The notes: generated by a model from the sequence alone, not told the origin. A DNA stretch of 64,000 nt from Auanema rhodensis (GCA_964057225.1 OZ059896.1:13640001-13704000), one strand, 5' to 3'; positions 1-23,110 are shown, counted from the first letter of the stretch. Numbers and translations: made by a program.

Positions 1-3000
1 CGGTCACATCGTGAGCACAGCCTGAACTTTTTTGTGAACAATCTTGTGGGTGTGCTTGGTATAAACCGTTTTTCCGGAAAATGGAGAGGTCCAAGCTAAA
101 TCTGAGTCGGATATTCAGATTCTTCATGTTTCATTACCCAAGTTCAGAATGTTTTTGTTTGAAAACATTTCATGATCGAAGAGAAAAACGGGGAATCACC
201 GGTCACATCGTGAGCACAGCCTGAACCTTTTTGTGAACAATCTTGTGGGTGTGCTTGGTATAAACCGTTTTTCCGGAAAACGGAGAGGTCTAAGCCTTTT
301 CTAAGTCGGATATTCAGATTCTTCATGTTTCATTACCCAAGTTCGGAATGTTTTTGTTCGAAAACATTTCATGATCGAAGAGTAAAACGGGGAATCACCG
401 GTCACATCGTGAACACAGCCTGAACCTTTTTGTGAACAATCTTGTGGGTGTGCTTGGTATAAACCGTTTTTCCGGAAAATGGAGAGGTCTAAGCCTTTTC
501 TAAGTCGGATATTCAGATTCTTCATGTTTCATTACCCAAGTTCAGAATGTTTTTGTTTGAAAACATTCCATGATCGAAGAGAAAAAAGGGGAATCACCGG
601 TCACATCGTGAGCACAGCCTGAACTTTTTTGTGAACAATCTTGTGGGTGTGCTTGGTATAAACCGTTTTTCCGGAAAATGGAGAGGTCTAAGCCTTTTCT
701 AAGTCGGATATTCAGATTCTTCATGTTTCATTACCCAAGTTCGGAATGTTTTTGTTTGAAAACATTTCATGATCGAAGAGAAAAACGGGGAATCACCGGT
801 CACATCGTGAACACAGCCTGAACCTTTTTGTGAACAATCTTGTGGGTGTGCTTGGTATAAACCGTTTTTCCGGAAAATGGAGAGGTCTAAGCCTTTTCTA
901 AGTCGGATATTCAGATTCTTCATGTTTCATTACCCAAGTTCAGAATGTTTTTGTTTGAAAACATTCCATGATCGAAGAGAAAAAAGGGGAATCACCGGTC
1001 ACATCGTGAGCACAGCCTGAACTTTTTTGTGAACAATCTTGTGGGTGTGCTTGGTATAAACCGTTTTTCCGGAAAATGGAGAGGTCTAAACCTTTTCTAA
1101 GTCGGATATTCTGATTCTTCATGTTTCATTACCCAAGTTCGGAATGTTTTTGTTTGAAAACATTTCATGATCGAAGAGAAAAACGGGGAATCACCGGTCA
1201 CATCGTGAACACAGCCTGAACCTTTTTGTGAACAATCTTGTGGGTGTGCTTGGTATAAACCGTTTTTCCGGAAAATGGAGAGGTCTAAGCCTTTTCTAAG
1301 TCGGATATTCAGATTCTTCATGTTTCATTACCCAAGTTCAGAATGTTTTTGTTCGAAAACATTCCATGATCGAAGAGAAAAAAGGGGAATCACCGGTCAC
1401 ATCGTGAGCACAGCCTGAACTTTTTTGTGAACAATCTTGTGGGTGTGCTTGGTATAAACCATTTTTCCGGAAAATGGAGAGGTCTAAGCCTTTTCTAAGT
1501 CTGATATTCAGATTCTTCATGTTTCATTACTCAAGTTCAGAATGTTTTTGTTTGAAAACATTCCATGATCGAAGAGAAAAAAGGGGAATCACCGGTCGCA
1601 TCGTGAACACAGCCTGAACTTTTTTGTGAACAATCTTGTGGGTGTGCCTGGTATAAACCCTTTTTCCGGAAAATGGAGAGGTCTAAGCCTTTTCTAAGTC
1701 GGATATTCAGATTCTTCATGTTTCATTACCCAAGTTCAGAATGTTTTTGTTTGAAAACATTTCATGATCGAAGAGAAAAACGGGGAATCACCGGTCACAT
1801 CATGAGCACAGCCTGAACTTTTTTGTGAACAATCTTGTGGGTGTGCTTGGTATAAACCGTTTTTCCGGAAAATGGAGAGGTCTAAGCCTTTTCTAAGTCG
1901 GATATTCAGATTCTTCATGTTTCATTACCGAAGTACAGAATGTTTTTGTTTGAAAACATTCCATGATCGAAGAGAAAAACGGGGAATCACCGGTCACATC
2001 GTGAGCACAGCCTGAACTTTTTTGTGAACAATCTTGTGGGTGTGCTTGGTATAAACCGTTTTTCCGGAAAATGGAGAGGTCCAAGCTAAATCTGAGTCGG
2101 ATATTCAGATTCTTCATGTTTCATTACCCAAGTTCGGAATGTTTTTGTTTGAAAACATTTCATGATCGAAGAGAAAAACGGGGAATCACCGGTCACATCG
2201 TGAGCACAGCCTGAACTTTTTTGTGAACAATCTTGTGGGTGTGCCTGGTATAAACCGTTTTTCCGGAAAATGGAGAGGTCCAAGCTAAATCTGAGTTGGA
2301 TATTCAGATTCTTCATGTTTCAATACCCAAGTTCAGAATGTTTTTGTTTGAAAATATTCCATGATCGAAGAGAAAAACGGGGAATCACCGGTCACATCGT
2401 GAGCACAGCCTGAACTTTTTTGTGAACAATCTTGTGGGTGTGCTTGGTATAAACCGTTTTTCCGGAAAATGGAGAGGTCCAAGCTAAATCTGAGTTGGAT
2501 ATTCAGATTCTTCATGTTTCAATACCCAAGTTCAGAATGTTTTTGTTTGAAAACATTCCATGATCGAAGAGAAAAACGGGGAATCACCGGTCACATCGTG
2601 AGCACAGCCTGAACTTTTTTGTGAACAATCTTGTGGGTGTGCTTGGTATAAACCGTTTTTCCGGAAAATGGAGAGGTCTAAGGCTTTTCTAAGTCGGATA
2701 TTCAGATTCTTCATGTTTCATTACCCAAGTTCAGAATGTTTTTGTTTGAAAACATTCCATGATCGAAGAGAAAAACGGGGAATCACCGGTAACATCGTGA
2801 GCACAGCCTGAACTTTTTTGTGAACAATCTTGTGGGTGTGCCTGGTATAAACCTTTTTCCGGAAAATGGAGAGGTCCAAGCTAAATCTGAGTTGGATATT
2901 CAGATTCTTCATGTTTCAATACCCAAGTTCAGAATGTTTTTGTTTGAAAACATTCCATGATCGAAGAGAAAAACGGGGAATCACCGGTCACATCGTGAGC

Positions 3001-6000
3001 ACAGCCTGAACTTTTTTGTGAACAATCTTGTGGGTGTGCTTGGTATAAACCGTTTTTCCGGAAAATGGAGAGGTCCAAGCTAAATCTGAGTTGGATATTC
3101 AGATTCTTCATGTTTCAATACCCAAGTTCAGAATGTTTTTGTTTGAAAACATTCCATGATCGAAGAGAAAAACGGGGAATCACCGGTCACATCGTGAGCA
3201 CAGCCTGAACTTTTTTGTGAACAATCTTGTGGGTGTGCTTGGTATAAACCGTTTTTCCGGAAAATGGAGAGGTCCAAGCTAAATCTGAGTTGGATATTCA
3301 GATTCTTCATGTTTCAATACCCAAGTTCAGAATGTTTTTGTTTGAAAGCATTTCATGATCGAAGAGAAAAACGGGGAATCACCGGTCACATCGTGAACAC
3401 AGCCTGAACTTTTTTGTGAACAATCTTGTGGGTGTGCTTGGTGTAAACCGTTTTTCCGGAAAATGGAGAGGTCTAAGCCTTTTCTAAGTCGGATATTCAG
3501 ATTCTTCATGTTTCATTACCCAAGTTCAGAATGTTTTTGTTTGAAAACATTCCATGATCGAAGAGAAAAACGGGGAATCACCGGTCACATCGTGAGCACA
3601 GCCTGAACTTTTTTGTGAACAATCTTGTGGGTGTGCCTGGTATAAACCGTTTTTCCGGAAAATGGAGAGGTCCAAGCTAAATCTGAGTTGGATATTCAGA
3701 TTCTTCATGTTTCAATACCCAAGTTCAGAATGTTTTTGTTTGAAAATATTCCATGATCGAAGAGAAAAACGGGGAATCACCGGTCACATCGTGAGCACAG
3801 CCTGAACTTTTTTGTGAACAATCTTGTGGGTGTGCTTGGTATAAACCGTTTTTCCGGAAAATGGAGAGGTCCAAGCTAAATCTGAGTTGGATATTCAGAT
3901 TCTTCATGTTTCAATACCCAAGTTCAGAATGTTTTTGTTTGAAAACATTCCATGATCGAAGAGAAAAACGGGGAATCACCGGTCACATCGTGAGCACAGC
4001 CTGAACTTTTTTGTGAACAATCTTGTGGGTGTGCTTGGTATAAACCGTTTTTCCGGAAAATGGAGAGGTCTAAGGCTTTTCTAAGTCGGATATTCAGATT
4101 CTTCATGTTTCATTACCCAAGTTCAGAATGTTTTTGTTTGAAAACATTCCATGATCGAAGAGAAAAACGGGGAATCACCGGTAACATCGTGAGCACAGCC
4201 TGAACTTTTTTGTGAACAATCTTGTGGGTGTGCCTGGTATAAACCTTTTTCCGGAAAATGGAGAGGTCCAAGCTAAATCTGAGTTGGATATTCAGATTCT
4301 TCATGTTTCAATACCCAAGTTCAGAATGTTTTTGTTTGAAAACATTCCATGATCGAAGAGAAAAACGGGGAATCACCGGTCACATCGTGAGCACAGCCTG
4401 AACTTTTTTGTGAACAATCTTGTGGGTGTGCTTGGTATAAACCGTTTTTCCGGAAAATGGAGAGGTCCAAGCTAAATCTGAGTTGGATATTCAGATTCTT
4501 CATGTTTCAATACCCAAGTTCAGAATGTTTTTGTTTGAAAACATTCCATGATCGAAGAGAAAAACGGGGAATCACCGGTCACATCGTGAGCACAGCCTGA
4601 ACTTTTTTGTGAACAATCTTGTGGGTGTGCTTGGTATAAACCGTTTTTCCGGAAAATGGAGAGGTCCAAGCTAAATCTGAGTTGGATATTCAGATTCTTC
4701 ATGTTTCAATACCCAAGTTCAGAATGTTTTTGTTTGAAAGCATTTCATGATCGAAGAGAAAAACGGGGAATCACCGGTCACATCGTGAACACAGCCTGAA
4801 CTTTTTTGTGAACAATCTTGTGGGTGTGCTTGGTGTAAACCGTTTTTCCGGAAAATGGAGAGGTCTAAGCCTTTTCTAAGTCGGATATTCAGATTCTTCA
4901 TGTTTCATTACCCAAGTTCAGAATGTTTTTGTTTGAAAACATTCCATGATCGAAGAGAAAAACGGGGAATCACCGGTCACATCGTGAGCACAGCCTGAAC
5001 TTTTTTGTGAACAATCTTGTGGGTGTGCTTGGTATAAACCGTTTTTCCGGAAAATGGAGAGGTCCAAGCCTTTTCTAAGTCTGATATTCAGATTCTTCAT
5101 GTTTCATTACCCAAGTTCAGAATGTTTTTGTTTGAAAATATTCCATGATCGAAGAGAAAAACGGGGAATCACCGGTCACATCGTGAGCACAGCCTGAACT
5201 TTTTTGTGAACAATCTTGTGGGTGTGCTTGGTATAAACCGTTTTTCCGGAAAATGGAGAGGTCCAAGCTAAATCTGAGTTGGATATTCAGATTCTTCATG
5301 TTTCAATACCCAAGTTCAGAAAGTTTTTGTTTGAAAACATTCCATGATCGAAGAGAAAAACGGGGAATCACCGGTCACATCGTGAGCACAGCCTGAACTT
5401 TTTTGTGAACAATCTTGTGGGTGTGCTTGGTATAAACCGTTTTTCCGGAAAATGGAGAGGTCCAAGCTAAATCTGAGTTGGATATTCAGATTCTTCATGT
5501 TTCAATACCCAAGTTCAGAATGTTTTTGTTTGAAAATATTCCATGATCGAAGAGAAAAACGGGGAATCACCGGTCACATCGTGAGCACAGCCTGAACTTT
5601 TTTGTGAACAATCTTGTGGGTGTGCTTGGTATAAACCGTTTTTCCGGAAAATGAAGAGGTCCAAGCTAAATCTGAGTTGGATATTCAGATTCTTCATGTT
5701 TCAATACCCAAGTTCAGAAAGTTTTTGTTTGAAAACATTCCATGATCGAAGAGAAAAACGGGGAATCACCGGTCACATCGTGAGCACAGCCTGAACTTTT
5801 TTGTGAACAATCTTGTGGGTGTGCTTGGTATAAACCGTTTTTCCGGAAAATGGAGAGGTCCAAGCTAAATCTGAGTTGGATATTCAGATTCTTCATGTTT
5901 CAATACCCAAGTTCAGAAAGTTTTTGTTTGAAAACATTCCATGATCGAAGAGAAAAACGGGGAATCACCGGTCACATCGTGAGCACAGCCTGAACTTTTT

Positions 6001-7344
6001 TGTGAACAATCTTGTGGGTGTGCTTGGTATAAACCGTTTTTCCGGAAAATGGAGAGGTCCAAGCTAAATCTGAGTTGGATATTCAGATTCTCCATGTTTC
6101 AATACCCAAGTTCAGAAAGTTTTTGTTTGAAAACATTCCATGATCGAAGAGAAAAACGGGGAATCACCGGTCACATCGTGAGCACAGCCTGAACTTTTTT
6201 GTGAACAATCTTGTGGGTGTGCTTGGTATAAACCGTTTTTTCGGAAAATGGAGAGGTCTAAGCCTTTTCTAAGTCGGATATTCTGATTCTTCATGTTTCA
6301 TTACCCAAGTTCAGAATGTTTTTGTTTGAAAACATTCCATGATCGAAGAGAAAAACGGGGAATCACCGGTCACATCGTGAGCACAGCCTGAACTTTTTTG
6401 TGAACAATCTTGTGGGTGTGCTTGGTATAAACCGTTTTTCCGGAAAATGGAGAGGTCCAAGCTAAATCTGAGTTGGATATTCAGATTCTTCATGTTTCAA
6501 TACCCAAGTTCAGAATGTTTTTGTTTGAAAACATTCCATGATCGAAGAGAAAAACGGGGAATCACCGGTCACATCGTGAGCACAGCCTGAACTTTTTTGT
6601 GAACAATCTTGTGGGTGTGCTTGGTATAAACCGTTTTTCCGGAAAATGGAGAGGTCCAAGCTAAATCTGAGTTGGATATTCAGATTCTTCATGTTTCAAT
6701 ACCCAAGTTCAGAATGTTTTTGTTTGAAAACATTCCATGATCGAAGAGAAAAACGGGGAATCACCGGTCATATCGTGAGCACAGCCTGAACTTTTTTGTG
6801 AACAATCTTGTGGGTGTGCTTGGTATAAACCGTTTTTCCGGAAAATGGAGAGGTCCAAGCTAAATCTGAGTTGGATATTCAGATTCTTCATGTTTCAATA
6901 CCCAAGTTCAGAATGTTTTTGTTTGAAAACATTCCATGATCGAAGAGAAAAACGGGGAATCACCGGTCACATCGTAAGCACAGCCTGAACTTTTTTGTGA
7001 ACAATCTTGTGGGTGTGCTTGGTATAAACCGTTTTTCCGGAAAATGGAGAGGTCCAAGCTAAATCTGAGTTGGATATTCAGATTCTTCATGTTTCAATAC
7101 CCAAGTTCAGAATGTTTTTGTTTGAAAACATTTCATGATCGAGGAGAAAAACGAGGAATCACCGGTCACATCGTGAACACAGCCTGAACTTTTTTGTGAA
7201 CAATCTTGTTGGTGTGCTTGGTATAAACCCTTTTTCCGGAAAATGGAGAGGTCGAAGCCAAGTCGGATATTCAGATTCTTCATGTTTCAATACCCAAGTT
7301 CAGAATATTTTTTTTTCAAAACATTTCATGATCGAGGAGAAAAA
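1..7344. repeat. 199-bp tandem satellite, left part (~37 monomers; continues beyond the window start)
   Basis: Near-identical 199-bp units, matching the 199-bp period of the ORF track. Two main variants: GGTCTAAGCCTTTTCTAAGTCGG and GGTCCAAGCTAAATCTGAGTTGG. Confidence 0.99.
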
Positions 7345-7540
7345 TAGAATTTTTTTACTATAATAAGACGTAAAAATGAGATTATATTTATTCGACTGTT
7401 AGCTATATTGTTTACATTGACCTCACGTTACAAAAAAAAAATTTTTTTTGAATAGGGTAATAAGACCGTGGGAAAGGCGGGCTTTAAGTATTGGCGGGAA
7501 CCGGGTTCTCAAGTCAATTCTATCAGTAAAACACTTCATA
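7345..7540 (-). repeat. DIRS 3' inverted terminal repeat (7,382-7,540) plus unique 3' extension (7,345-7,381)
   Basis: Inverted copy of 11,623-11,781. The extra 37 bp has no counterpart at the other end, like the rE extension of DIRS-1. Confidence 0.93.
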
Positions 7541-7726
7541 ATTTCTAAAAAGTTAAAGGGGATACAAAACGATACTGACAGAGAGATCTTCGGATAGGGA
7601 TGAGCAGGATCTATCTTCGTGGAACTGGGTTCTTCGAGGGGCGTCGGAATCTAAAGAAAAACGTAATCTAGAGAGCGCGAGGAAGGGACTCCGTAGGTGG
7701 AGACCAAGGGGTGGAAGGTGGGACTC

Positions 7727-7804
7727 CAGTCGAATAAATATAATCTCTTTTTTACGTCTTATTATAGTAAAAAAATTCTATTATATTTATTCGACTGTTA
7801 GCTA
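7727..7804 (-). other. DIRS internal complementary region (ICR)
   Basis: 7,727-7,780 is the reverse complement of 7,345-7,398, and 7,781-7,804 is the reverse complement of 11,758-11,781 (one mismatch each). It overlaps the YR stop codon at 7,798-7,800. Confidence 0.93.
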
Positions 7805-8742
7805 GTTAAAGAAAATAAGGAGTCCTGGAAAGAGCGTCTCTTGCAATAGTGTTTGAAGAAGGTGCTTTCCGAGGCCCAGTTAGCTGCGTCTAAAATAGTT
7901 TTGACAGGCAGTCCATTCTCAAAAGCTTTGGACGTAGCGGCAGCACGTACTGAGTGAGCTTTGAATTTTGTGGGGATTCCCGCTTCTTCTAGGCAAGTTC
8001 TAATCCAACCCGCTACCGTAGTTGCGACTACTGGTTCTCCTCTGTTAATGCTAACTAGAAGGTTTCGCGATCGACGAGTATGCATGGTAGCCGACAGGTA
8101 GGCATTTATGCAATCAATGGGGCAGACAAGAGGGCGTTCTGAATGGCTTTCGAAACAAGCTTCGCGGGGAGGGCCCTTGCCCCTATTCTTGTTCCTGAAT
8201 TCGATGAAGAAGGTGACCCCTCGTGTGTCAAAGCGCATGTGGTCGAGTGATAGCACCGATAGTTCCGATGCTCGTTGAGGGGAGCACATAGCTAAGAGGG
8301 TAGCAAGCTTGCGGGTTAGACAGTCTAAGGACAGCGAATCGTTAGGACCTAGACTTTCTAGGTGAGCCAAGACCGTAGAAGGGTCCCAGATATCCATGTA
8401 TCTAGCGTGTGGAGGCTTGGAACGATATATCCCGCGGAGAAGCTTTTTTAACATCGGATCGTCCCGGAGTGGGGGAGTTACGGAATAGTGTTCAGCGAGA
8501 GGGCAGAGAGCCGCCCTTGCTGTAGCAGCTGAGGAAAAACCGTTGTTCTCTGCCCGATGGGCTAAGAAATTGGCAACATTTTTTGCATTGGGGATGAACT
8601 CGATCTGGGATAGCTTGCAATAATTCTCCCAAGCTCTGTAAGCCGTGTTATATTGTTTTCGGGTACCAGGAGCGAAAGCGTTTACCAATAGTAGTTTGGT
8701 CTGGTCCGATATTCCTTCTATGTTGGCGGTGAAATCCTCCAC
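7798..8742 (-). CDS. DIRS tyrosine recombinase (integrase)
   Basis: N-terminal core-binding segment (APGTRKQY..AW..YC) and catalytic residues R (QRASE), H-x-x-R (HSVR), W (ANW) and Y (FFKHY). Overlaps the pol end and has no in-frame ATG at its start. Confidence 0.95.
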   Translation of the reverse strand: MEDFTANIEGISDQTKLLLVNAFAPGTRKQYNTAYRAWENYCKLSQIEFIPNAKNVANFLAHRAENNGFSSAATARAALCPLAEHYSVTPPLRDDPMLKKLLRGIYRSKPPHARYMDIWDPSTVLAHLESLGPNDSLSLDCLTRKLATLLAMCSPQRASELSVLSLDHMRFDTRGVTFFIEFRNKNRGKGPPREACFESHSERPLVCPIDCINAYLSATMHTRRSRNLLVSINRGEPVVATTVAGWIRTCLEEAGIPTKFKAHSVRAAATSKAFENGLPVKTILDAANWASESTFFKHYCKRRSFQDSLFSLTS

Positions 8743-11371
8743 GCCGCCAGGAAAAATTTCTTGTCCCCAGGAGGGGGTGAGAGTTGCCTTTCTTGTCTTG
8801 GAGAAGGCTGGGATGATGGAGGCTCATTGGGGGTTCCTGGACTAGTTGGGACAGAAGGGGAAACCAGATCTGGCTTTTCCAAAGTGGAGCGATCAGGATG
8901 GCCTGTCGTCCTGAGTCTGCCAACTTGTTGATGGTCCTCTTGAGGAGGTGGAAGGGCGGGAAGACGAAGAGAAGTCCTTGCGGCAGCAGTTTCCAGTTGT
9001 GAGAGAAGGCGTCTACGCAGAATGCGTTCTCGTCTAGAAGGAAAGAGCAGTAAAGTGGTGCCTTTGCGTTCCAGGAGGATGCAAAAAGATCAAATGAAGG
9101 GGTACCGAATCTTTGGAAAATACTCGCAGTCGTCTCCGGATGGAGGGACCAATCTTCGTGAAGGCATCTACCCCTGGAGAGTTGGTCTGCGATGTGATTC
9201 AGTCTGCCGGCGATGTGCGTTGCTCTGACTCGGATATTGCGCTCCCTGCAGAAGTGCCAGAGCTTACGGGCTATTTCCGAACCTCGTTCTGAGGCCGAGC
9301 CACCCCGCCTGTTGATGTAAGTTATCGCCGATGTGTTATCGATTAACAGTAACACGTCAATATTGCACCACTCAGTGCCGAAATGGACCAGGGCTTTGAA
9401 GGCCGCAATAAGTTCCAACCAGTTTATGTGATAAGCATATTTCTCCTTGATTGACCATTTCCCTGAGATAGTGTTGCCTTCCCATGATGCTCCATATCCT
9501 TCACCGGAGGCGTCCGATGTAATGGACAGGGATGGAGAGAAGGGTACAAGTGAACTCGGGGAGCCTAGTGTGCAAGATTCTTCTGATAGGAAGGCACGTA
9601 AGGTATCCCGAAGGTCTCCTACAATAGAGACCTGAGCGGAAAGCTCGTTGGGGTCGTTTAGGTTGGGAAAACCTATGCCTCGTAAATCTCTTTGAGTTTG
9701 TCTAACCCAAAAGGAAAAATGTGGGTGTACCACAGTGGCGAAGTTGATTCTCCCGAGGAGGGAGGCCAGTTTCCGGAGTGGGGAGGCCTGGGATCTGAGA
9801 AGGACCGACAGGGAGGTGCTTATAGCCTCCCGTTTCTCTGTTGGCAGGCGCCATTCAAGAGAGCGCGTGTCTATTTCTAAACCTAGAAAATCGAGCGATT
9901 GGGTAGGGCTTAAGATGGATTTAAGCATGTTAATAGAGAAACCCGCGTCACGGAATAGATCTATAGCACGAGACGCATGATCGGCCACTCTTGTGGCTGA
10001 CCTGTCTAGAAAAAGCCAGTCGTCAAGGTAGTTGATTAGGCGAATTCCCTGATCCCTGAGGAGCGCTGCAAGCACCCTCATCAGCTTATGAAACACGTAT
10101 GGGGCTGCGTTTAGGCCGAAAGGAAGGACGCAGAACACGTATGATCTGCCCTCTATATCAAAGCCCAGGTAGGGTTGATGTTCTATTGCCACAGGGATAG
10201 AATGATAGGCCGACTGGAAGTCCACCTTGCATAACCAATCATTGCGTTGCAACACCGATGGGAGGTCCCTAACGGATTCCAGCTTGAACCGGGGTGTCTC
10301 TATGAAGGTGTTAAGCGTCTTCAAGTTGAGGATAAAGCGGCTGGACCCATCGGACTTGGGTACTAGAAAAGTAGAGGACCGGAAGATCCTTTCGCCAGGT
10401 CTAGCCGGTCTGATTGCCCCCGTCTCCAAAAGCTCCGCAAGGAGAGGGTTAGCCGGAAGGGATTGCGGTAACGATGTCAGATTTGACAGAAGGCGCTTAG
10501 GTTTACTCCCTGCGAAAGGGAGGCGGTAGCCTTTTACCGTCTGAAGGATATCCTGGTCTTTAGAGAAGGAACCCCAAAAGTCTAGGTGGGACGAAAGAGC
10601 ACCTGCTCGAAAATGGACGCACCTGCTATAGGAGTTAGCCTTGTGGATGGGTCGTGTTGATGGTCCCGATCGTTGGTTCGATGACGGTCTTGGACGTTGA
10701 TGATCTCGGGAACTTGAATTGGTTCTTGAGTTTCTAGAGAGTTCAGAGAAAGCCGAGATTTCTGCCCTTAGCTTCTTTCCGAAGAGTTCCGGGACTGAGT
10801 CCTGAGAATAAAGATTAATAGACGTTGGTCGCTTATGGCATCCTACCTCCTGAGAGTTGTCGAGAGACATGGTAGAACCGTAGAGCGGGGCCCTTTTGTA
10901 GCTAGGCATAGCCTTGATGGGCTGAGAGTACTTCATTTTAAGAAGTGCGATCTCTCTGAGGTGAGTATAATCCGTCTTGATATTGGCGCTGAGGAATCTT
11001 TCTGTCACGTTGATGTATGCCTGTTGTTTGGAGGAAAGTGGAGACTTGTTATCGATCTTCGCAAGTTTCCTGATGATCCGTAGGCCGGCGAGCGCATTGA
11101 GCGTGTTCTCGTAAGAGGCCCTGATGTCAGCCTCGCTGATCTTCACTGATGGCTTGACTGAGCTATCCACGTGGGTGGTGTATTTCTCATCCAGGCATGG
11201 TAGACGGGCGAATGGAGAATCGAGTATTGGGAGCTCAGATAAGATGTCGGCTCTTTCGGTGTGCGTCATGGAGCAACCGGAGGCAAGACGCTCGAAGTCG
11301 GCAAGTTCGGAACCGGAGAGGCGGACTACAGGCCTGGTTCTAGGTCCTTGAGATTCTGGTGGCATGGGCAC
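8648..11371 (-). CDS. DIRS Gag-like + reverse transcriptase + RNase H + DNA N6-adenine-methyltransferase-like polyprotein
   Basis: RT: DFQSAYHSI, LPFGL, YLDD. RNase H: SDASGEGYG, HINWLEL, IDNTSA, NHIADQLSR. MT: DLFAS...DAFS..W...FPPF. The N-terminal ~250 aa are Gag-like by position. True start and C-terminus are uncertain (see findings). Confidence 0.95.
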   Translation of the reverse strand: MPMPPESQGPRTRPVVRLSGSELADFERLASGCSMTHTERADILSELPILDSPFARLPCLDEKYTTHVDSSVKPSVKISEADIRASYENTLNALAGLRIIRKLAKIDNKSPLSSKQQAYINVTERFLSANIKTDYTHLREIALLKMKYSQPIKAMPSYKRAPLYGSTMSLDNSQEVGCHKRPTSINLYSQDSVPELFGKKLRAEISAFSELSRNSRTNSSSRDHQRPRPSSNQRSGPSTRPIHKANSYSRCVHFRAGALSSHLDFWGSFSKDQDILQTVKGYRLPFAGSKPKRLLSNLTSLPQSLPANPLLAELLETGAIRPARPGERIFRSSTFLVPKSDGSSRFILNLKTLNTFIETPRFKLESVRDLPSVLQRNDWLCKVDFQSAYHSIPVAIEHQPYLGFDIEGRSYVFCVLPFGLNAAPYVFHKLMRVLAALLRDQGIRLINYLDDWLFLDRSATRVADHASRAIDLFRDAGFSINMLKSILSPTQSLDFLGLEIDTRSLEWRLPTEKREAISTSLSVLLRSQASPLRKLASLLGRINFATVVHPHFSFWVRQTQRDLRGIGFPNLNDPNELSAQVSIVGDLRDTLRAFLSEESCTLGSPSSLVPFSPSLSITSDASGEGYGASWEGNTISGKWSIKEKYAYHINWLELIAAFKALVHFGTEWCNIDVLLLIDNTSAITYINRRGGSASERGSEIARKLWHFCRERNIRVRATHIAGRLNHIADQLSRGRCLHEDWSLHPETTASIFQRFGTPSFDLFASSWNAKAPLYCSFLLDENAFCVDAFSHNWKLLPQGLLFVFPPFHLLKRTINKLADSGRQAILIAPLWKSQIWFPLLSQLVQEPPMSLHHPSLLQDKKGNSHPLLGTRNFSWRRGGFHRQHRRNIGPDQTTIGKRFRSWYPKTI

Positions 11372-11622
11372 GAAGTCGTCCTCGTCCGAGGAGTCATGTC
11401 GAACTTAATCGAGTTCTTCATGGGAGTTTACCGAGTGATCGCCTTGGGTTGATTCCGTAGGTGTGAGACGGCCATCGCGTCGTGAAGATTCCAAAGAGCC
11501 GTCTGATGAGATCGAGACGGATGAGCGGCCTCTTTTCGGGGCAGGCTCATGATCAGGGGCTTGTCCCTTCTTGGTAGTGCGAGCGGGGCCATAGCGACCA
11601 ACCGTGAGGCTCGAAACAAAAA

Positions 11623-11781
11623 TATGAAGTGTTTTACTGATAGAATTGACTTGAGAACCCGGTTCCCGCCAATACTTAAAGCCCGCCTTTCCCACGGTCT
11701 TATTACCCTATTCAAAAAAAATTTTTTTTTTGTAACGTGAGGTCAATGTAAACAATATAGCTAACAGTCGAAAAAATATAA
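11623..11781 (-). repeat. DIRS 5' inverted terminal repeat (159 bp)
   Basis: Reverse complement of 7,382-7,540 with one mismatch seen by eye. Confidence 0.95.
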
Positions 11782-14700
11782 CGAGGAATCACCGGTCACA
11801 TCGTGAACACAGCCTGAACTTTTTTGTGAACAATCTTGTGGGTGTGCTTGGTATAAACCGTTTTTCCGGAAAATGGAGAGGTCCAAGCTAAATCTGAGTT
11901 GGATATTCAGATTCTTCATGTTTCAATACCCAAGTTCAGAATGTTTTTGTTTGAAAACATTCCATGATCGAAGAGAAAAACGGGGAATCACCGGTCACAT
12001 CGTGAGCACAGCCTGAACTTTTTTGTGAACAATCTTGTGGGTGTGCTTGGTATAAACCGTTTTTCCGGAAAATGGAGAGGTCTAAGCCTTTTCTAAGTCG
12101 GATATTCAGATTCTTCATGTTTCATTACCCAAGTTCAGAATGTTTTTGTTTGAAAACATTCCATGATCGAAGAGAAAAACGGGGAATCACCGGTCACATC
12201 GTGAGCACAGCCTGAACTTTTTTGTGAACAATCTTGTGGGTGTGCTTGGTATAAACCGTTTTTCCGGAAAATGGAGAGGTCCAAGCTAAATCTGAGTTGG
12301 ATATTCAGATTCTTCATGTTTCAATACCCAAGTTCAGAATGTTTTTGTTTGAAAACATTCCATGATCGAAGAGAAAAACGGGGAATCACCGGTCATATCG
12401 TGAGCACAGCCTGAACTTTTTTGTGAACAATCTTGTGGGTGTGCTTGGTATAAACCGTTTTTCCGGAAAATGGAGAGGTCCAAGCTAAATCTGAGTTGGA
12501 TATTCAGATTCTTCATGTTTCAATACCCAAGTTCAGAATGTTTTTGTTTGAAAACATTCCATGATCGAAGAGAAAAACGGGGAATCACCGGTCACATCGT
12601 AAGCACAGCCTGAACTTTTTTGTGAACAATCTTGTGGGTGTGCTTGGTATAAACCGTTTTTCCGGAAAATGGAGAGGTCCAAGCTAAATCTGAGTTGGAT
12701 ATTCAGATTCTTCATGTTTCAATACCCAAGTTCAGAATGTTTTTGTTTGAAAACATTCCATGATCGAAGAGAAAAACGGGGAATCACCGGTCACATCGTG
12801 AGCACAGCCTGAACTTTTTTGTGAACAATCTTGTGGGTGTGCTTGGTATAAACCGTTTTTCCGGAAAATGGAGAGGTCTAAGCCTTTTCTAAGTCGGATA
12901 TTCAGATTCTTCATGTTTCATTACCCAAGTTCAGAATGTTTTTGTTTGAAAACATTCCATGATCGAAGAGAAAAACGGGGAATCACCGGTCACATCGTGA
13001 GCACAGCCTGAACTTTTTTGTGAACAATCTTGTGGGTGTGCTTGGTATAAACCGTTTTTCCGGAAAATGGAGAGGTCCAAGCTAAATCTGAGTTGGATAT
13101 TCAGATTCTTCATGTTTCAATACCCAAGTTCAGAATGTTTTTGTTTGAAAACATTCCATGATCGAAGAGAAAAACGGGGAATCACCGGTCACATCGTGAG
13201 CACAGCCTGAACTTTTTTGTGAACAATCTTGTGGGTGTGCTTGGTATAAACCGTTTTTCCGGAAAATGGAGAGGTCCAAGCTAAATCTGAGTTGGATATT
13301 CAGATTCTTCATGTTTCAATACCCAAGTTCAGAAAGTTTTTGTTTGAGAACATTCCATGATCGAAGAGAAAAACGGGGAATCACCGGTCACATCGTGAGC
13401 ACAGCCTGAACTTTTTGTGAACAATCTTGTGGGTGTGCTTGGTATAAACCGTTTTTCCGGAAAATGGAGAGGTCTAAGCCTTTTCTAAGTCTGATATTCA
13501 GATTCTTCATGTTTCATTACCCAAGTTCGGAATGTTTTTGTTTGAAAGCATTTCATGATCGAAGAGAAAAACGGGGAATCACCGGTCACATCGTGAACAC
13601 AGCCTGAACTTTTTTGTGAACAATCTTGTGGGTGTGCTTGGTATAAACCGTTTTTCCGGAAAATGGAGAGGTCTAAGCCTTTTCTAAGTCTGATATTCAG
13701 ATTCTTCATGTTTCATTACCGAAGTACAGAATGTTTTTGTTTGAAAACATTCAATGATCGAAGAGAAAAACGGGGAATCACCGGTCACATCGTGAGCACA
13801 GCCTGAACTTTTTGTGAACAATCTTGTGGGTGTGCTTGGTATAAACCGTTTTTCCGGAAAATGGAGAGGTCCAAGCTAAATCTGAGTTGGATATTCAGAT
13901 TCTTCATGTTTCATTACTCAAGTTCAGAATGTTTTTGTTTGAAAACATTCCATGATCGAAGAGAAAAACGGGGAATCACCGGTCACATCGTGAGCACAGC
14001 CTGAACTTTTTGTGAACAATCTTGTGGGTGTGCTTGGTATAAACCGTTTTTCCGGAAAATGGAGAGGTCCAAGCTAAATCTGAGTTGGATATTCAGATTC
14101 TTCATGTTTCAATACCCAAGTTCAGAAAGTTTTTGTTTGAAAACATTCCATGATCGAAGAGAAAAACGGGGAATCACCGGTCACATCGTGAGCACAGCCT
14201 GAACTTTTTTGTGAACAATCTTGTGGGTGTGCTTGGTATAAACCGTTTTTCCGGAAAATGGAGAGGTCCAAGCTAAATCTGAGTTGGATATTCAGATTCT
14301 TCATGTTTCAATACCCAAGTTCAGAATGTTTTCACTTGAAAACATTCCATGATCGGAGAGAAAAACGGGGAATCACCGGTCACATCGTGAGCACAGCCTG
14401 AACTTTTTTGTGAACAATCTTGTGGGTGTGCTTGGTATAAACCGTTTTTCCGGAAAATGGAGAGGTCCAAGCTAAATCTGAGTTGGATATTCAGATTCTT
14501 CATGTTTCGATACCCAAGTTCAGAAAGTTTTTGTTTGAAAACATTCCATGATCGAAGAGAAAAACGGGGAATCACCGGTCACATCGTGAGCACAGCCTGA
14601 ACTTTTTTGTGAACAATCTTGTGGGTGTGCTTGGTATAAACCGTTTTTCCGGAAAATGGAGAGGTCCAAGCTAAATCTGAGTTGGATATTCAGATTCTTC

Positions 14701-17700
14701 ATGTTTCAATACCCAAGTTCAGAAAGTTTTTGTTTGAAAACATTCCATGATCGAAGAGAAAAACGGGGAATCACCGGTAACATCGTGAGCACAGCCTGAA
14801 CTTTTTTGTGAACAATCTTGTGGGTGTGCTTGGTATAAACCGTTTTTCCGGAAAATAGAGAGGTCCAAGCTAAATATGAGTTGGATATTCAGATTCTTCA
14901 TGTTTCAATACCCAAGTTCAGAATGTTTTCATTTGAAAACATTCCATGATCGAAGAGAAAAACGGGGAATCACCGGTCACATCGTGAGCACAGCCTGAAA
15001 TTTTTTGTGAACAATCTTGTGGGTGTGCTTGGTATAAACCGTTTTTCCGGAAAATGGAGAGGTCCAAGCTAAATCTGAGTTGGATATTCAGATTCTTCAT
15101 GTTTCGATACCCAAGTTCAGAAAGTTTTTGTTTGAAAACATTCCATGATCGAAGAGAAAAACGGGGAATCACCGGTCACATCGTGAGCACAGCCTGAACT
15201 TTTTTGTGAACAATCTTGTGGGTGTGCTTGGTATAAACCGTTTTTCCGGAAAATGGAGAGGTCCAAGCTAAATCTGAGTTGGATATTCAGATTCTTCATG
15301 TTTCAATACCCAAGTTCAGAAAGTTTTTGTTTGAAAACATTCCATGATCGAAGAGAAAAACGGGGAATCACCGGTAACATCGTGAGCACAGCCTGAACTT
15401 TTTTGTGAACAATCTTGTGGGTGTGCTTGGTATAAACCGTTTTTCCGGAAAATAGAGAGGTCCAAGCTAAATATGAGTTGGATATTCAGATTCTTCATGT
15501 TTCAATACCCAAGTTCAGAATGTTTTCATTTGAAAACATTCCATGATCGAAGAGAAAAACGGGGAATCACCGGTCACATCGTGAGCACAGCCTGAACTTT
15601 TTTGTGAACAATCTTGTGGGTGTGCTTGGTATAAACCGTTTTTCCGGAAAATGGAGAGGTCTAAGCCTTTTCTAAGTCTGATATTCAGATTCTTCATGTT
15701 TCATTACCCAAGTTCGGAATGTTTTTGTTTGAAAGCATTTCATGATCGAAGAGAAAAACGGGGAATCACCGGTCACATCGTGAACACAGCCTGAACTTTT
15801 TTGTGAACAATCTTGTGGGTGTGCTTGGTATAAACCGTTTTTCCGGAAAATGGAGAGGTCCAAGCTAAATCTGAGTTGGATATTCAGATTCTTCATGTTT
15901 CATTACCCAAGTTCAGAATGTTTTTGTTTGAAAACATTCCATGATCGAAGAGAAAAACGGGGAATCACCGGTCACATCGTGAGCACAGCCTGAACTTTTT
16001 TGTGAACAATCTTGTGGGTGTGCTTGGTATAAACCGTTTTTCCGGAAAATGGAGAGGTCTAAGCCTTTTCTAAGTCTGATATTCAGATTCTTCATGTTTC
16101 ATTACCCAAGTTCGGAATGTTTTTGTTTGAAAGCATTTCATGATCGAAGAGAAAAACGGGGAATCACCGGTCACATCGTGAACACAGCCTGAACTTTTTT
16201 GTGAACAATCTTGTGGGTGTGCTTGGTATAAACCGTTTTTCCGGAAAATGGAGAGGTCTAAGCCTTTTCTAAGTCGGATATTCAGATTCTTCATGTTTCA
16301 TTACCCAAGTTCAGAATGTTTTTGTTTGAAAACATTCCATGATCGAAGAGAAAAACGGGGAATCACCGGTCACATCGTGAGCACAGCCTGAACTTTTTTG
16401 TGAACAATCTTGTGGGTGTGCTTGGTATAAACCGTTTTTCCGGAAAATGGAGAGGTCCAAGCTAAATCTGAGTTGGATATTCAGATTCTTCATGTTTCAA
16501 TACCCAAGTTCAGAATGTTTTTGTTTGAAAACATTCCATGATCGAAGAGAAAAACGGGGAATCACCGGTCACATCGTGAGCACAGCCTGAACTTTTTTGT
16601 GAACAATCTTGTGGGTGTGCTTGGTATAAACCGTTTTTCCGGAAAATGGAGAGGTCCAAGCTAAATCTGAGTTGGATATTCAGATTCTTCATGTTTCAAT
16701 ACCCAAGTTCAGAAAGTTTTTGTTTGAGAACATTCCATGATCGAAGAGAAAAACGGGGAATCACCGGTCACATCGTGAGCACAGCCTGAACTTTTTGTGA
16801 ACAATCTTGTGGGTGTGCTTGGTATAAACCGTTTTTCCGGAAAATGGAGAGGTCTAAGCCTTTTCTAAGTCTGATATTCAGATTCTTCATGTTTCATTAC
16901 CCAAGTTCGGAATGTTTTTGTTTGAAAGCATTTCATGATCGAAGAGAAAAACGGGGAATCACCGGTCACATCGTGAACACAGCCTGAACTTTTTTGTGAA
17001 CAATCTTGTGGGTGTGCTTGGTATAAACCGTTTTTCCGGAAAATGGAGAGGTCTAAGCCTTTTCTAAGTCTGATATTCAGATTCTTCATGTTTCATTACC
17101 GAAGTACAGAATGTTTTTGTTTGAAAACATTCAATGATCGAAGAGAAAAACGGGGAATCACCGGTCACATCGTGAGCACAGCCTGAACTTTTTGTGAACA
17201 ATCTTGTGGGTGTGCTTGGTATAAACCGTTTTTCCGGAAAATGGAGAGGTCCAAGCTAAATCTGAGTTGGATATTCAGATTCTTCATGTTTCATTACTCA
17301 AGTTCAGAATGTTTTTGTTTGAAAACATTCCATGATCGAAGAGAAAAACGGGGAATCACCGGTCACATCGTGAGCACAGCCTGAACTTTTTGTGAACAAT
17401 CTTGTGGGTGTGCTTGGTATAAACCGTTTTTCCGGAAAATGGAGAGGTCCAAGCTAAATCTGAGTTGGATATTCAGATTCTTCATGTTTCAATACCCAAG
17501 TTCAGAAAGTTTTTGTTTGAAAACATTCCATGATCGAAGAGAAAAACGGGGAATCACCGGTCACATCGTGAGCACAGCCTGAACTTTTTTGTGAACAATC
17601 TTGTGGGTGTGCTTGGTATAAACCGTTTTTCCGGAAAATGGAGAGGTCCAAGCTAAATCTGAGTTGGATATTCAGATTCTTCATGTTTCAATACCCAAGT

Positions 17701-20700
17701 TCAGAATGTTTTCACTTGAAAACATTCCATGATCGAAGAGAAAAACGGGGAATCACCGGTCACATCGTGAGCACAGCCTGAACTTTTTGTGAACAATCTT
17801 GTGGGTGTGCTTGGTATAAACCGTTTTTCCGGAAAATGGAGAGGTCCAAGCTAAATCTGAGTTGGATATTCAGATTCTTCATGTTTCAATACCCAAGTTC
17901 AGAAAGTTTTTGTTTGAAAACATTCCATGATCGAAGAGAAAAACGGGGAATCACCGGTCACATCGTGAGCACAGCCTGAACTTTTTTGTGAACAATCTTG
18001 TGGGTGTGCTTGGTATAAACCGTTTTTCCGGAAAATGGAGAGGTCCAAGCTAAATCTGAGTTGGATATTCAGATTCTTCATGTTTCGATACCCAAGTTCA
18101 GAAAGTTTTTGTTTGAAAACATTCCATGATCGAAGAGAAAAACGGGGAATCACCGGTCACATCGTGAGCACAGCCTGAACTTTTTTGTGAACAATCTTGT
18201 GGGTGTGCTTGGTATAAACCGTTTTTCCGGAAAATGGAGAGGTCCAAGCTAAATCTGAGTTGGATATTCAGATTCTTCATGTTTCAATACCCAAGTTCAG
18301 AAAGTTTTTGTTTGAAAACATTCCATGATCGAAGAGAAAAACGGGGAATCACCGGTAACATCGTGAGCACAGCCTGAACTTTTTTGTGAACAATCTTGTG
18401 GGTGTGCTTGGTATAAACCGTTTTTCCGGAAAATGGAGAGGTCCAAGCTAAATCTGAGTTGGATATTCAGATTCTTCATGTTTCAATACCCAAGTTCAGA
18501 ATGTTTTCACTTGAAAACATTCCATGATCGAAGAGAAAAACGGGGAATCACCGGTCACATCGTGAGCACAGCCTGAACTTTTTGTGAACAATCTTGTGGG
18601 TGTGCTTGGTATAAACCGTTTTTCCGGAAAATGGAGAGGTCCAAGCTAAATCTGAGTTGGATATTCAGATTCTTCATGTTTCAATACCCAAGTTCAGAAA
18701 GTTTTTGTTTGAAAACATTCCATGATCGAAGAGAAAAACGGGGAATCACCGGTCACATCGTGAGCACAGCCTGAACTTTTTTGTGAACAATCTTGTGGGT
18801 GTGCTTGGTATAAACCGTTTTTCCGGAAAATGGAGAGGTCCAAGCTAAATCTGAGTTGGATATTCAGATTCTTCATGTTTCGATACCCAAGTTCAGAAAG
18901 TTTTTGTTTGAAAACATTCCATGATCGAAGAGAAAAACGGGGAATCACCGGTCACATCGTGAGCACAGCCTGAACTTTTTTGTGAACAATCTTGTGGGTG
19001 TGCTTGGTATAAACCGTTTTTCCGGAAAATGGAGAGGTCCAAGCTAAATCTGAGTTGGATATTCAGATTCTTCATGTTTCAATACCCAAGTTCAGAAAGT
19101 TTTTGTTTGAAAACATTCCATGATCGAAGAGAAAAACGGGGAATCACCGGTAACATCGTGAGCACAGCCTGAACTTTTTTGTGAACAATCTTGTGGGTGT
19201 GCTTGGTATAAACCGTTTTTCCGGAAAATAGAGAGGTCCAAGCTAAATATGAGTTGGATATTCAGATTCTTCATGTTTCAATACCCAAGTTCAGAATGTT
19301 TTCATTTGAAAACATTCCATGATCGAAGAGAAAAACGGGGAATCACCGGTCACATCGTGAGCACAGCCTGAACTTTTTTGTGAACAATCTTGTGGGTGTG
19401 CTTGGTATAAACCGTTTTTCCGGAAAATGGAGAGGTCTAAGCCTTTTCTAAGTCTGATATTCAGATTCTTCATGTTTCATTACCCAAGTTCGGAATGTTT
19501 TTGTTTGAAAGCATTTCATGATCGAAGAGAAAAACGGGGAATCACCGGTCACATCGTGAACACAGCCTGAACTTTTTTGTGAACAATCTTGTGGGTGTGC
19601 TTGGTATAAACCGTTTTTCCGGAAAATGGAGAGGTCCAAGCTAAATCTGAGTTGGATATTCAGATTCTTCATGTTTCATTACCCAAGTTCAGAATGTTTT
19701 TGTTTGAAAACATTCCATGATCGAAGAGAAAAACGGGGAATCACCGGTCACATCGTGAGCACAGCCTGAACTTTTTTGTGAACAATCTTGTGGGTGTGCT
19801 TGGTATAAACCGTTTTTCCGGAAAATGGAGAGGTCTAAGCCTTTTCTAAGTCTGATATTCAGATTCTTCATGTTTCATTACCCAAGTTCGGAATGTTTTT
19901 GTTTGAAAGCATTTCATGATCGAAGAGAAAAACGGGGAATCACCGGTCACATCGTGAACACAGCCTGAACTTTTTTGTGAACAATCTTGTGGGTGTGCTT
20001 GGTATAAACCGTTTTTCCGGAAAATGGAGAGGTCTAAGCCTTTTCTAAGTCGGATATTCAGATTCTTCATGTTTCATTACCCAAGTTCAGAATGTTTTTG
20101 TTTGAAAACATTCCATGATCGAAGAGAAAAACGGGGAATCACCGGTCACATCGTGAGCACAGCCTGAACTTTTTTGTGAACAATCTTGTGGGTGTGCTTG
20201 GTATAAACCGTTTTTCCGGAAAATGGAGAGGTCCAAGCTAAATCTGAGTTGGATATTCAGATTCTTCATGTTTTATTACTCAAGTTCAGAAAGTTTTTGT
20301 TTGAAAACATTCCATGATCGAAGAGAAAAACGGGGAATCACCGGTCACATCGTGAGCACAGCCTGAACTTTTTTGTGAACAATCTTGTGGGTGTGCTTGG
20401 TATAAACCGTTTTTCCGGAAAATAGAGAGGTCCAAGCTAAATCTGAGTTGGATATTCAGATTCTTCATGTTTCAATACCCAAGTTCAGAATATTTTTATT
20501 TCAAAACATTTCATGATCGAGGAGAAAAACAGGGAATCACCGGTCGCATCGTGAGCACAGCCTGAACTTTTTTGTGAACAATCTTGTGGGTGTGCTTGGT
20601 ATAAACCGTTTTTCCGGAAAATGGAGAGGTCGAAGCCTTTTCTAAGTCGGATATTCAGATTCTTCATGTTTCAATACCCAAGTTCAGAATATTTTTATTT

Positions 20701-22930
20701 CAAAACATTTCATGATCGAGGAGAAAAGCGCGGAATCACCGGTCACATCGTGAGCACAGCCTGAACTTTTTTGTGAACAATCTTGTGGGTGTGCTTGGTA
20801 TAAACCGTTTTTCCGGAAAATGGAGAGGTCCAAGCTAAATCTGAGTTGGATATTCAGATTCTTCATGTTTCAATACCCAAGTTCAGAATGTTTTTGTTTG
20901 AAAACATTCCATGATCGAAGAGAAAAACGGGGAATCAGCGGTCACATCGTGAGCACAGCCTGAACTTTTTTGTGAACAATCTTGTGGGTGTGCTTGGTAT
21001 AAACCGTTTTTCCGGAAAATGGAGAGGTCCAAGCTAAATCTGAGTTGGATATTCAGATTCTTCATGTTTCAATACCCAAGTTCAGAATATTTTTATTTCA
21101 AAACATTTCATGATCGAGGAGAAAAGCGCGGAATCACCGGTCACATCGTGAGCACAGCCTGAACTTTTTTGTGAACAATCTTGTGGGTGTGCTTGGTATA
21201 AACCGTTTTTCCGGAAAATGGAGAGGTCCAAGCTAAATCTGAGTTGGATATTCAGATTCTTCATGTTTCAATACCCAAGTTCAGAATGTTTTTGTTTGAA
21301 AACATTCCATGATCGAAGAGAAAAACGGGGAATCAGCGGTCACATCGTGAGCACAGCCTGAACTTTTTTGTGAACAATCTTGTGGGTGTGCTTGGTATAA
21401 ACCGTTTTTCCGGAAAATGGAGAGGTCCAAGCTAAATCTGAGTTGGATATTCAGATTCTTCATGTTTCAATACCCAAGTTCAGAATATTTTTATTTCAAA
21501 ACATTTCATGATCGAGGAGAAAAACAGGGAATCACCGGTCGCATCGTGAACACAGCCTGAACTTTTTTGTGAACAATCTTGTGGGTGTGCTTGGTATAAA
21601 CCGTTTTTCCGGAAATTGGAGAGGTCCAAGCTAAATCTGAGTTGGATATTCAGATTCTTCATGTTTCAATACCCAAGTTCAGAATGTTTTCATTTGAAAA
21701 CATTTCATGATCGAGGAGAAAAGCGGGGAATCACCGGTCACATCGTGAGCACAGCCTGAACTTTTTTGTGAACAATCTTGTGGGTGTGCTTGGTATAAAC
21801 CGTTTTTCCGGAAAATGGAGAGGTCCAAGCTAAATCTGAGTTGGATATTCAGATTCTTCATGTTTCAATACCCAAGTTCAGAATATTTTTATTTCAAAAC
21901 ATTTCATGATCGAGGAGAAAAACAGGGAATCACCGGTCGCATCGTGAACACAGCCTGAACTTTTTTGTGAACAATCTTGTGGGTGTGCTTGGTATAAACC
22001 GTTTTTCCGGAAATTGGAGAGGTCCAAGCTAAATCTGAGTTGGATATTCAGATTCTTCATGTTTCAATACCCAAGTTCAGAATGTTTTCATTTGAAAACA
22101 TTTCATGATCGAGGAGAAAAGCGGGGAATCACCGGTCACATCGTGAGCACAGCCTGAACTTTTTTGTGAACAATCTTGTGGGTGTGCTTGGTATAAACCG
22201 TTTTTCCGGAAATTGGAGAGGTCCAAGCTAAATCTGAGTTGGATATTCAGATTCTTCATGTTTCAATACCCAAGTTCAGAAAGTTTTTGTTTGAAAACAT
22301 TCCATGATCGAAGAGAAAAACGGGGAATCACCGGTCACATCGTGAGCACAGCCTGAACTTTTTTGTGAACAATCTTGTGGGTGTGCTTGGTATAAACCGT
22401 TTTTCCGGAAAATGGAGAGGTCCAAGCTAAATCTGAGTTGGATATTCAGATTCTTCATGTTTCAATACCCAAGTTCAGAATATTTTTATTTCAAAACATT
22501 TCATGATCGAGGAGAAAAACAGGGAATCACCGGTCGCATCGTGAACACAGCCTGAACTTTTTTGTGAACAATCTTGTGGGTGTGCTTGGTATAAACCGTT
22601 TTTCCGGAAATTGGAGAGGTCCAAGCTAAATCTGAGTTGGATATTCAGATTCTTCATGTTTCAATACCCAAGTTCAGAATATTTTTATTTCAAAACATTT
22701 CATGATCGAGGAGAAAAACAGGGAATCACCGGTCGCATCGTGAACACAGCCTGAACTTTTTTGTGAACAATCTTGTGGGTGTGCTTGGTATAAACCGTTT
22801 TTCCGGAAATTAGAGAGGTCCAAGCTAAATCTGAGTTGGATATTCAGATTCTTCATGTTTCAATACCCAAGTTCAGAATGTTTTCATTTGAAAACATTTC
22901 ATGATCGAGGAGAAAAGCGGGGAATCACCT
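11782..22930. repeat. 199-bp tandem satellite, right part (~56 monomers)
   Basis: Resumes in exact register (CGAGGAATCACCGGTC) after the insertion and ends at GAATCACC ~22,928. More divergent monomers occur from ~20,485 on. Confidence 0.99.
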
Positions 22931-23110
22931 GGTCCCCGAGGTCCCCGAGGACCAGGAGCCCGAGAACCAGGAGCCCGAGGACCGAGGGCCCAGAACTGGG
23001 AGCCCGAGGGCCAGGACCCCGATGACCAGGACCCCGAGGACCCAGAGCTTGGAGCCCGAGGACCAGGAGCACGAGGACCAGGAGCACGAGGACCAGGAGC
23101 ACGAGGACCG
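22931..23110 (+). repeat. GC-rich ~15-bp minisatellite (GAGGACCAGGAGC[C/A]C) capping the satellite array
   Basis: Roughly a dozen imperfect units, three perfect at ~23,058-23,102. Degenerate CCAGGAC echoes continue to ~23,255. Confidence 0.85.

Follow-up and report, generated by a model that had tools for sequence, protein, structure and literature searches.

Satellites derived from 5S ribosomal DNA (rDNA), transfer RNA (tRNA) and small nuclear RNA (snRNA) genes are known from animals and plants, in which a gene array loses its function but persists and spreads as a non-coding satellite. For spliced-leader (SL) genes, the closest described system is the MelSat01/INC satellite of root-knot nematodes, which is the Mi-SL1b spliced-leader gene: a whole SL gene makes up each unit, in which variation is lowest in the SL exon, the splice donor and the Sm site (PMC9673304). 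No decayed SL-derived satellite was described in the literature found by a search on satellites and spliced leaders. Here we describe a 199-bp tandem repeat of the nematode Auanema rhodensis, the units of which hold a stretch resembling the SL1 leader. The sequence studied is a stretch of 64,000 nucleotides (C4:13640001-13704000 of a 181-Mb assembly), referred to as the window.

Like MelSat01, the repeat is a short nematode tandem satellite with SL1 leader sequence in its unit. Unlike MelSat01, the 199-bp unit has no RNA body, donor or Sm site, and its leader-like stretch is among its most variable parts; the direct counterparts of MelSat01 in this genome are the 252-, 341- and 291-bp SL1 gene arrays. 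With the 252-bp array the satellite shares a leader matching at 15-16 of 17 positions and, equally ordered and spaced, some 110 nt of upstream spacer at 75% identity over aligned pairs, but its unit is 53 bp shorter, scores at most 15 bits rather than 112-115 bits with an SL1 model of the genome, and has neither the promoter block nor the Sm site. We conclude that the satellite units are not SL RNA genes. From the alignments we infer, with a confidence only somewhat better than even and short of proof, that the 199-bp monomer arose by decay from the 252-bp SL1 gene array, losing the RNA body. The satellite would then differ from those derived from 5S rDNA, tRNA or snRNA genes in that its source was a spliced-leader RNA gene.

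A 199-bp satellite with a leader-like motif

A head-to-tail array with a 199-bp period was called at 1-22934 of the window by Tandem Repeats Finder (TRF), and a map made by blastn to the consensus placed 91 full monomers in register there, with 92-100% identity to the consensus. The first genome pattern matches of this plus-strand array lie at C4:13630775, ~9 kb before the window, and the locus holds about 155 monomers. Related organisms (runs X7 and X9-X11) have this locus too. Smaller, diverged arrays are present elsewhere, and seven subfamilies with 68-91% identity were distinguished on four chromosomes (C1, C3, C4 and C6): the arrays at C4:14.55 Mb, C4:14.73 Mb and C1:14.61 Mb show 84-88% identity, and those at C3:18.70, C6:4.71 and C6:6.76 Mb show 75-78%. 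No long open reading frames (ORFs) were found in the satellite. With long non-coding head-to-tail arrays that are homogenised within and diverged between several loci, the 199-bp repeat is a non-genic satellite DNA family. The features of the array are listed in Table 1.

The pattern GTTTMAWTACCCAAGTT was matched 82 times in the window, always on the plus strand and with 199-bp spacing, and never in 100 shuffles of the window. In these 82 monomers the motif reads GTTTCA[A/T]TACCCAAGTT. The original prediction held that every monomer carries a near-perfect copy of SL1, matching positions 2-18 at 16 or 15 of 17 letters. Both match levels were recovered among the 89 monomers of exactly 199 bp, where the T form (16/17) accounts for 27 and the A form (15/17) for 51. 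The word "every" has to be softened, as the remaining 11 carry other forms with 14-15/17, and the commonest form (A) is the poorer match. Overall, about 62% of monomers stand at 15/17 and about 30% at 16/17. Against the full 22-nt SL1 leader, GGTTTAATTACCCAAGTTTGAG, the motif matches at 15/22 positions without gaps, with disagreement at the last four. After the motif, the monomers most often continue with CAGAATGT, CAGAAAGT or CGGAATGT.

The likeness was claimed to be improbable by chance, and this was borne out by the checks. A match of at least 15/17 to SL1 was reached by a single one of 20,000 dinucleotide shuffles of the monomer, and the analytic, composition-matched chance per monomer is 7.3e-5 at that level and 3.2e-6 for 16/17 or better. 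As a control, the reversed pattern was searched in the 181-Mb genome with up to 2 mismatches, which gave 27 sites, or about 3e-5 per 199 bp. A hairpin of 8-10 bp follows the motif immediately, as had been noted; in the alignment its position is retained in other subfamilies with different letters.

No constraint on the motif is visible. Among the copies of the array, minor alleles have a mean fraction of 0.029 in the motif and 0.026 in the remainder of the monomer, and two common polymorphisms, A/T and CAG/CGG, fall inside the motif. Conservation across the seven subfamilies was ranked over the 199 windows of 22 nt per monomer, and 176 of these outrank the motif. The leader-like stretch of the diverged subfamilies matches SL1 at 11-15 of 18 positions; the core TACCCAA is common to nearly all subfamilies, and the core TACCCAAGTT is kept in five of the seven.

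Table 1. Features of the satellite array, in window coordinates
Feature	Position	Strand	Basis or remark
Satellite, first block	1..7344	+	TRF, blastn map; extends upstream of the window to about C4:13630700
110 nt 5' of the motif (example monomer; same in every unit)	17..126	+	Collinear with the 110 nt 5' of the leader in the 252-bp SL1 unit
Top-conserved satellite box AGCCTGAACTTTTTTGTGAACA, holding the "Sm-like" T-run	19..40	+	Ranks first of 199 windows of 22 nt; mean column identity 98.7% over seven subfamilies
First SL1-leader-like motif, GTTTCATTACCCAAGTTCAG	128..147	+	Recurs each 199 bp; 82 exact pattern matches
Hairpin (inverted repeat) directly 3' of the motif, AATGTTTT / AAAACATT	148..169	+	8-10 bp; arms 148-155 and 162-169
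67 nt 3' of the motif (expected site of an SL RNA body)	148..214	+	No detectable likeness to any SL1 gene body
DIRS-like retrotransposon inside a monomer, outside the repeat unit	7345..11779	-	Gap in the monomer map; ORF domains
Satellite, second block	11780..22934	+	TRF, blastn map; terminates inside a monomer at 22934

The SL1 genes of the genome

Intact SL1 genes occur in arrays of 252-bp units at C3:6.74-7.10 Mb, of 341-bp units at C3:14.13 Mb, and of 291/281-bp units with a U19A leader on C8. About 3,450 leaders within one mismatch were counted across the 252-, 341- and 291-bp arrays. The three families have a common SL RNA body (86% mean column identity) and are unlike each other upstream of the leader. 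Their intact genes have a GAG|GTA donor, and an invariant AATTTTGGAA lies 44 nt after the donor in all three. A block, ATACGRYRCACGTGC, stands at about -50 in the 252- and 341-bp units and is a putative snRNA-type promoter element.

Some of these units differ from the intact form. Edge units of the 252-bp array (L018:1501-2100, C3:6.7445-6.7452 Mb) read GAG|ATAC in place of GAG|GTAC, so the splice donor is dead there, and some units of the 252-bp array are thus dying too. Eight further exact leaders in the C3 and C8 arrays (L048-L055) are followed by T or C and are point mutants. The real SL1 arrays therefore include pseudogene units. The edge subvariant of the 252-bp array is the most satellite-like of the units compared. 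In the spacer of a 341-bp unit (L023), about 165 nt before the next leader, the sequence CCAAGTTCAGATGTA nearly equals the satellite's CCAAGTTCAGAATGT, with which it has an exact 11-mer in common; either another worn leader or a chance match (about 0.03-0.08) may lie behind this. As a sign of homology between the satellite and the 341-bp spacer, the 11-mer CCAAGTTCAGA was set aside, being consistent with chance at that level.

The satellite units are not SL RNA genes

All monomers lack a GT donor directly after the motif: the letters there are CAG|AA or CGG|AA throughout, in agreement with what was first noted. The nearest GT (AAT|GTTTTT) would make a poor donor, and other subfamilies no longer have it. 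Neither the Sm site AAUUUUGG nor the invariant AATTTTGGAA is present in the satellite monomer. The Sm-site-like run reported ~97 nt downstream is a real T-run, AAC(T/C)TTTTTGTG, 96-97 nt 3' of the motif; its box reads ACUUUUUUGU instead of AAUUUUGG, and its partner in the alignment is a T-run of the 252-bp SL1 unit's spacer. The ATACGRYRCACGTGC promoter block has no match within 3 mismatches anywhere in the array. In the 67 nt 3' of the motif, semi-global alignment to the three SL1 families gave p > 0.05 throughout, despite a likeness seen by eye (TCAC..GTGAGC).

Searches with RNA models gave the same picture. The Rfam scan of the whole window at gathering score found nothing, and the check that had been proposed with the SL1 (RF00198), SL2 (RF00199) and SmY (RF01844) models was run on 1-1200 at E <= 10 and gave no match to any of them, just a noise-level ceN89 on the minus strand. 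A covariance model, R1, was built on the three SL1 families of the genome, and its scoring was checked on SL1 genes outside the training set. Real SL1 genes scored 112-115 bits with it. No satellite subfamily exceeded 15 bits (E >= 0.16) with filters off, and minus-strand scores on the satellite were as high as those on the plus strand. The putative RNA of 124 nt folds no better than shuffles (z = +0.29).

Three assemblies (X12-X14) show zero depth over 20000-22934 of the array and cover a neighbouring gene. They are of RNA: their contigs splice seven GT..AG introns of the plus-strand gene at 24172-25872. A DNA run (X1) covers the array heavily. These RNA data are assembled contigs from small runs, probably polyA-selected, from which short non-polyadenylated or rare RNAs would escape; the contigs show no transcription of the array, and such short or rare RNAs may be made from it. 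With no donor, RNA body, Sm site or promoter block, the unit therefore yields no RNA competent for trans-splicing, and we regard any function in trans-splicing as very unlikely.

Possible relationship to the 252-bp SL1 array

The 110 nt upstream of the motif were compared with the spacer of the 252-bp SL1 unit by semi-global alignment, using 20,000 real genomic windows as the null. Identical letters were found at 72 of 96 aligned pairs, and the score was 19.5 against a null of 7.2 +/- 2.8 (p = 5.5e-4). Subfamily L029 gave p = 1.2e-3, and the majority consensus of the family scored 17.0. When all 252 shifts were scanned, the peak fell at the leader-anchored register (shift 0 to -8). Individual real units gave z values of 1.7-4.6, and the 341-bp and 291-bp families, used as controls, gave z of about 0. 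The 7-mers common to the monomer and the 252-bp unit lie on one diagonal, upstream of the leader. In this alignment the T-run box AGCCTGAACTTTTTTGTGAACA of the satellite pairs with the T-run CCGGAAACTTTTATTGTTCAGAA of the SL1 spacer and not with the Sm site, and the SL1 promoter block pairs with a degenerate stretch. Because the alignment with this spacer is register-specific, though weak, we favour descent. Also in its favour are the low chance probability of the motif and the fact that this genome has its SL1 genes in satellite-like arrays.

Several results weigh against that descent. The upstream similarity is visible in 3 of 7 scoring schemes, permissive ones only, and with the many alignment tests run its corrected p lies nearer 0.005-0.02. 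An nhmmer search of the family profile against the 252-bp SL1 array was not significant (E about 1), nor were whole-unit alignments, including those with cheap long gaps that model a 53-nt deletion. Stringent local alignment of the monomer to SL units aligned the leader alone (p about 0.01-0.02), and with the leader masked one of 24 local tests was nominally significant (p = 0.006). The RNA body remains unmatched in the 67 nt after the motif, despite 88-94% identity in the leader. Agreement with SL1 falls to 11/18 in the most diverged subfamilies, the ancestral motif reconstructed by parsimony is no closer to SL1 than the present 15/18, and a genome search gave no intermediate or recombinant leader forms except the point mutants in the SL arrays. 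The proposal that the satellite is an amplified derivative of an SL RNA gene keeps moderate support from the collinear upstream 110 nt, under permissive scoring only.

If descent is correct, an old copy of the 252-bp SL1 repeat would be the source of the 199-bp monomer. The satellite unit would have kept the 22-nt leader exon in worn form, together with some 110 nt of the spacer upstream of it, and would have lost the GT donor, the snRNA body of roughly 75 nt with its Sm site and stem-loops, and the promoter block at about -50. The decayed array would then have survived as plain satellite DNA and come to occupy four chromosomes. If the 199-bp family did split from the 252-bp array, it would be a case in which a small-RNA gene array turned into plain satellite DNA, lost its gene body and reached four chromosomes.

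Alternative explanations

The resemblance could also be a coincidence, in which an ordinary satellite holds a chance 15-16/17 match to SL1 and the spacer similarity is noise from many alignments. We consider this a real possibility, though not the probable one. It fits the failure to find similarity to the SL RNA body, the empty results of nhmmer and stringent scoring, and a motif that ranks among the least conserved windows, with the oldest subfamilies at 11/18 and just TACCCAA common to nearly all. The subfamily in the window is moreover the best SL1 match, and hence the likeliest to be noticed. The low per-monomer chance of at least 15/17 (about 7e-5) and the 27 background sites in 181 Mb speak against coincidence, as does the fact that four of the seven subfamilies already stand at 15/18; so does the upstream similarity, which is confined to one SL1 family, is highest in the correct register and is found again with individual units. 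Coincidence would also be favoured if the motif and the conserved ATTCAGAT block were the two arms of a weak dyad, the less SL1-like form being ancestral. This is the best inverted pair in two subfamilies, but it is not significant (p 0.06-0.6) and was therefore not used for the polarity of the motif. Much less probable is an origin of the monomer from the reverse-transcribed 5' end of an SL1-trans-spliced mRNA, in which the leader alone would be SL-derived and an ATG would come after it. Such a retrocopy would account for the absent donor and RNA body; the similarity to SL genes ends at the 3' end of the leader, and A-ATG follows the motif in the window's subfamily. However, the ATG is not kept (other subfamilies have ATA), the reading frame is closed by a stop after 8 codons, a poly(A) tract is missing from the monomer, and a genome search with the monomer matches satellite arrays only. 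Exact leaders followed by C or T number only 8, all of them point mutants in SL arrays and none solitary, so leader-bearing retrocopies do not appear to be common here. The upstream similarity to the 252-bp spacer would also be left unexplained, and we find an origin as a retrocopy hard to credit.

The original prediction also raised the ideas of an array of about 90 SL-like cassettes and of a divergent SL or SmY-like RNA. In a working array the units would be transcribed from the motif and used in trans-splicing or assist it; mRNAs would start with GTTTCA[A/T]TACCCAAGTTCAG, and RNAs of about 100 nt would begin at the motif. The unit does have a 5' end like the leader, a hairpin and, about 97 nt 3', a U-run, and an RNA of this kind is expected to be about 100 nt long. 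The idea is nevertheless not supported, given the missing donor, Sm site and promoter block, the negative results with RNA models of both kinds and the fold; in addition, the CAG/CGG and A/T polymorphisms fall inside the supposed leader, the motif has no extra conservation, and no RNA contigs lie on the array. Of all the explanations it is the one to which we give least credence. A decoy at the DNA level is barely more plausible. The leader is said to act as an internal promoter element of SL genes in Ascaris, and about 250 copies of the motif could still bind an SL-promoter factor, titrating it or driving weak transcription. The core kept in five of seven subfamilies would agree with this. 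Any effect would be small, as the copies face a more than tenfold excess of real leaders (about 250 against about 3,450), and neither conservation above background, within or between arrays, nor transcription in the RNA contigs was seen. The corresponding prediction, that roughly 250 worn leaders recruit a leader-reading factor and thereby give short capped or small RNAs, or titration, is one we expect to fail. If true, a dead SL1 array would be kept as a regulatory sink for the supply of trans-splicing.

Whichever origin is correct, the satellite is of modest interest as a curiosity and calls for caution in annotation; it does not represent a new kind of element. Its roughly 250 leader-like sites could mislead counts of SL genes, SL-based read trimming and RNA gene annotation, and they should not be annotated as SL genes.

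Duplication and higher-order structure of the arrays

The 4.4-kb insertion that splits the array encodes a reverse transcriptase (RVT_1, 1.3e-19) and a tyrosine recombinase domain (4.4e-12), and is therefore a DIRS-like retrotransposon. The element and its flanking monomers (6900-12286) recur inverted 11 kb upstream, at C4:13623567-13628973 (L040:2568-7974), across 5,407 bp at 99.1% identity. What looks like two insertions at the same monomer position is therefore a single one together with an inverted segmental duplication, and not a pair of independent integrations.

An inverted duplication of at least 6-10 kb and 99.9% identity has the array at C4:14.73 Mb (L044/L045, C4:14726000-14748799) at its centre, and the flank of this array is also copied at C4:14.55 Mb (L046, C4:14546000-14554600), next to another array. 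The satellite arrays seem to mark the hinges of large recent palindromes. Transposon flanks common to the arrays were considered as the vehicle of spread and rejected: what borders the arrays at both C4:14.55 and C4:14.73 Mb is large, recently duplicated sequence and not short terminal repeats. The flank of the window's array has nothing in common with the flanks at C4:14.55 and 14.73 Mb.

Within the array, the order of monomer variants at 13412-20169, read as identity to the consensus, recurs after about 3.4-3.8 kb, and near the window start the CAG and CGG forms of the motif alternate with a 398-bp period. Both point to higher-order repeats or internal segmental duplication. Turnover of the satellite arrays would proceed through unequal exchange together with segmental or inverted duplication, which is shown in part.

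Neighbouring features

The end of the array is adjoined at 22944-23109 by a GC-rich repeat of 15-bp and 52-bp units, one frame of which reads as collagen-like Gly-Pro-Arg triplets; it could be a fragment of a collagen gene or a mere microsatellite. The plus-strand gene at 24172-25872 has at least 8 exons and seven GT..AG introns in the three transcriptome assemblies, and its contigs start at 24172-24175 without a spliced leader. Further downstream, an ORF at 28126-28470 with the signature ...DNDPKHTA...WPSQSPDLNPIEHLW... presumably corresponds to the C-terminal part of a Tc1/mariner transposase and is probably a transposon remnant.

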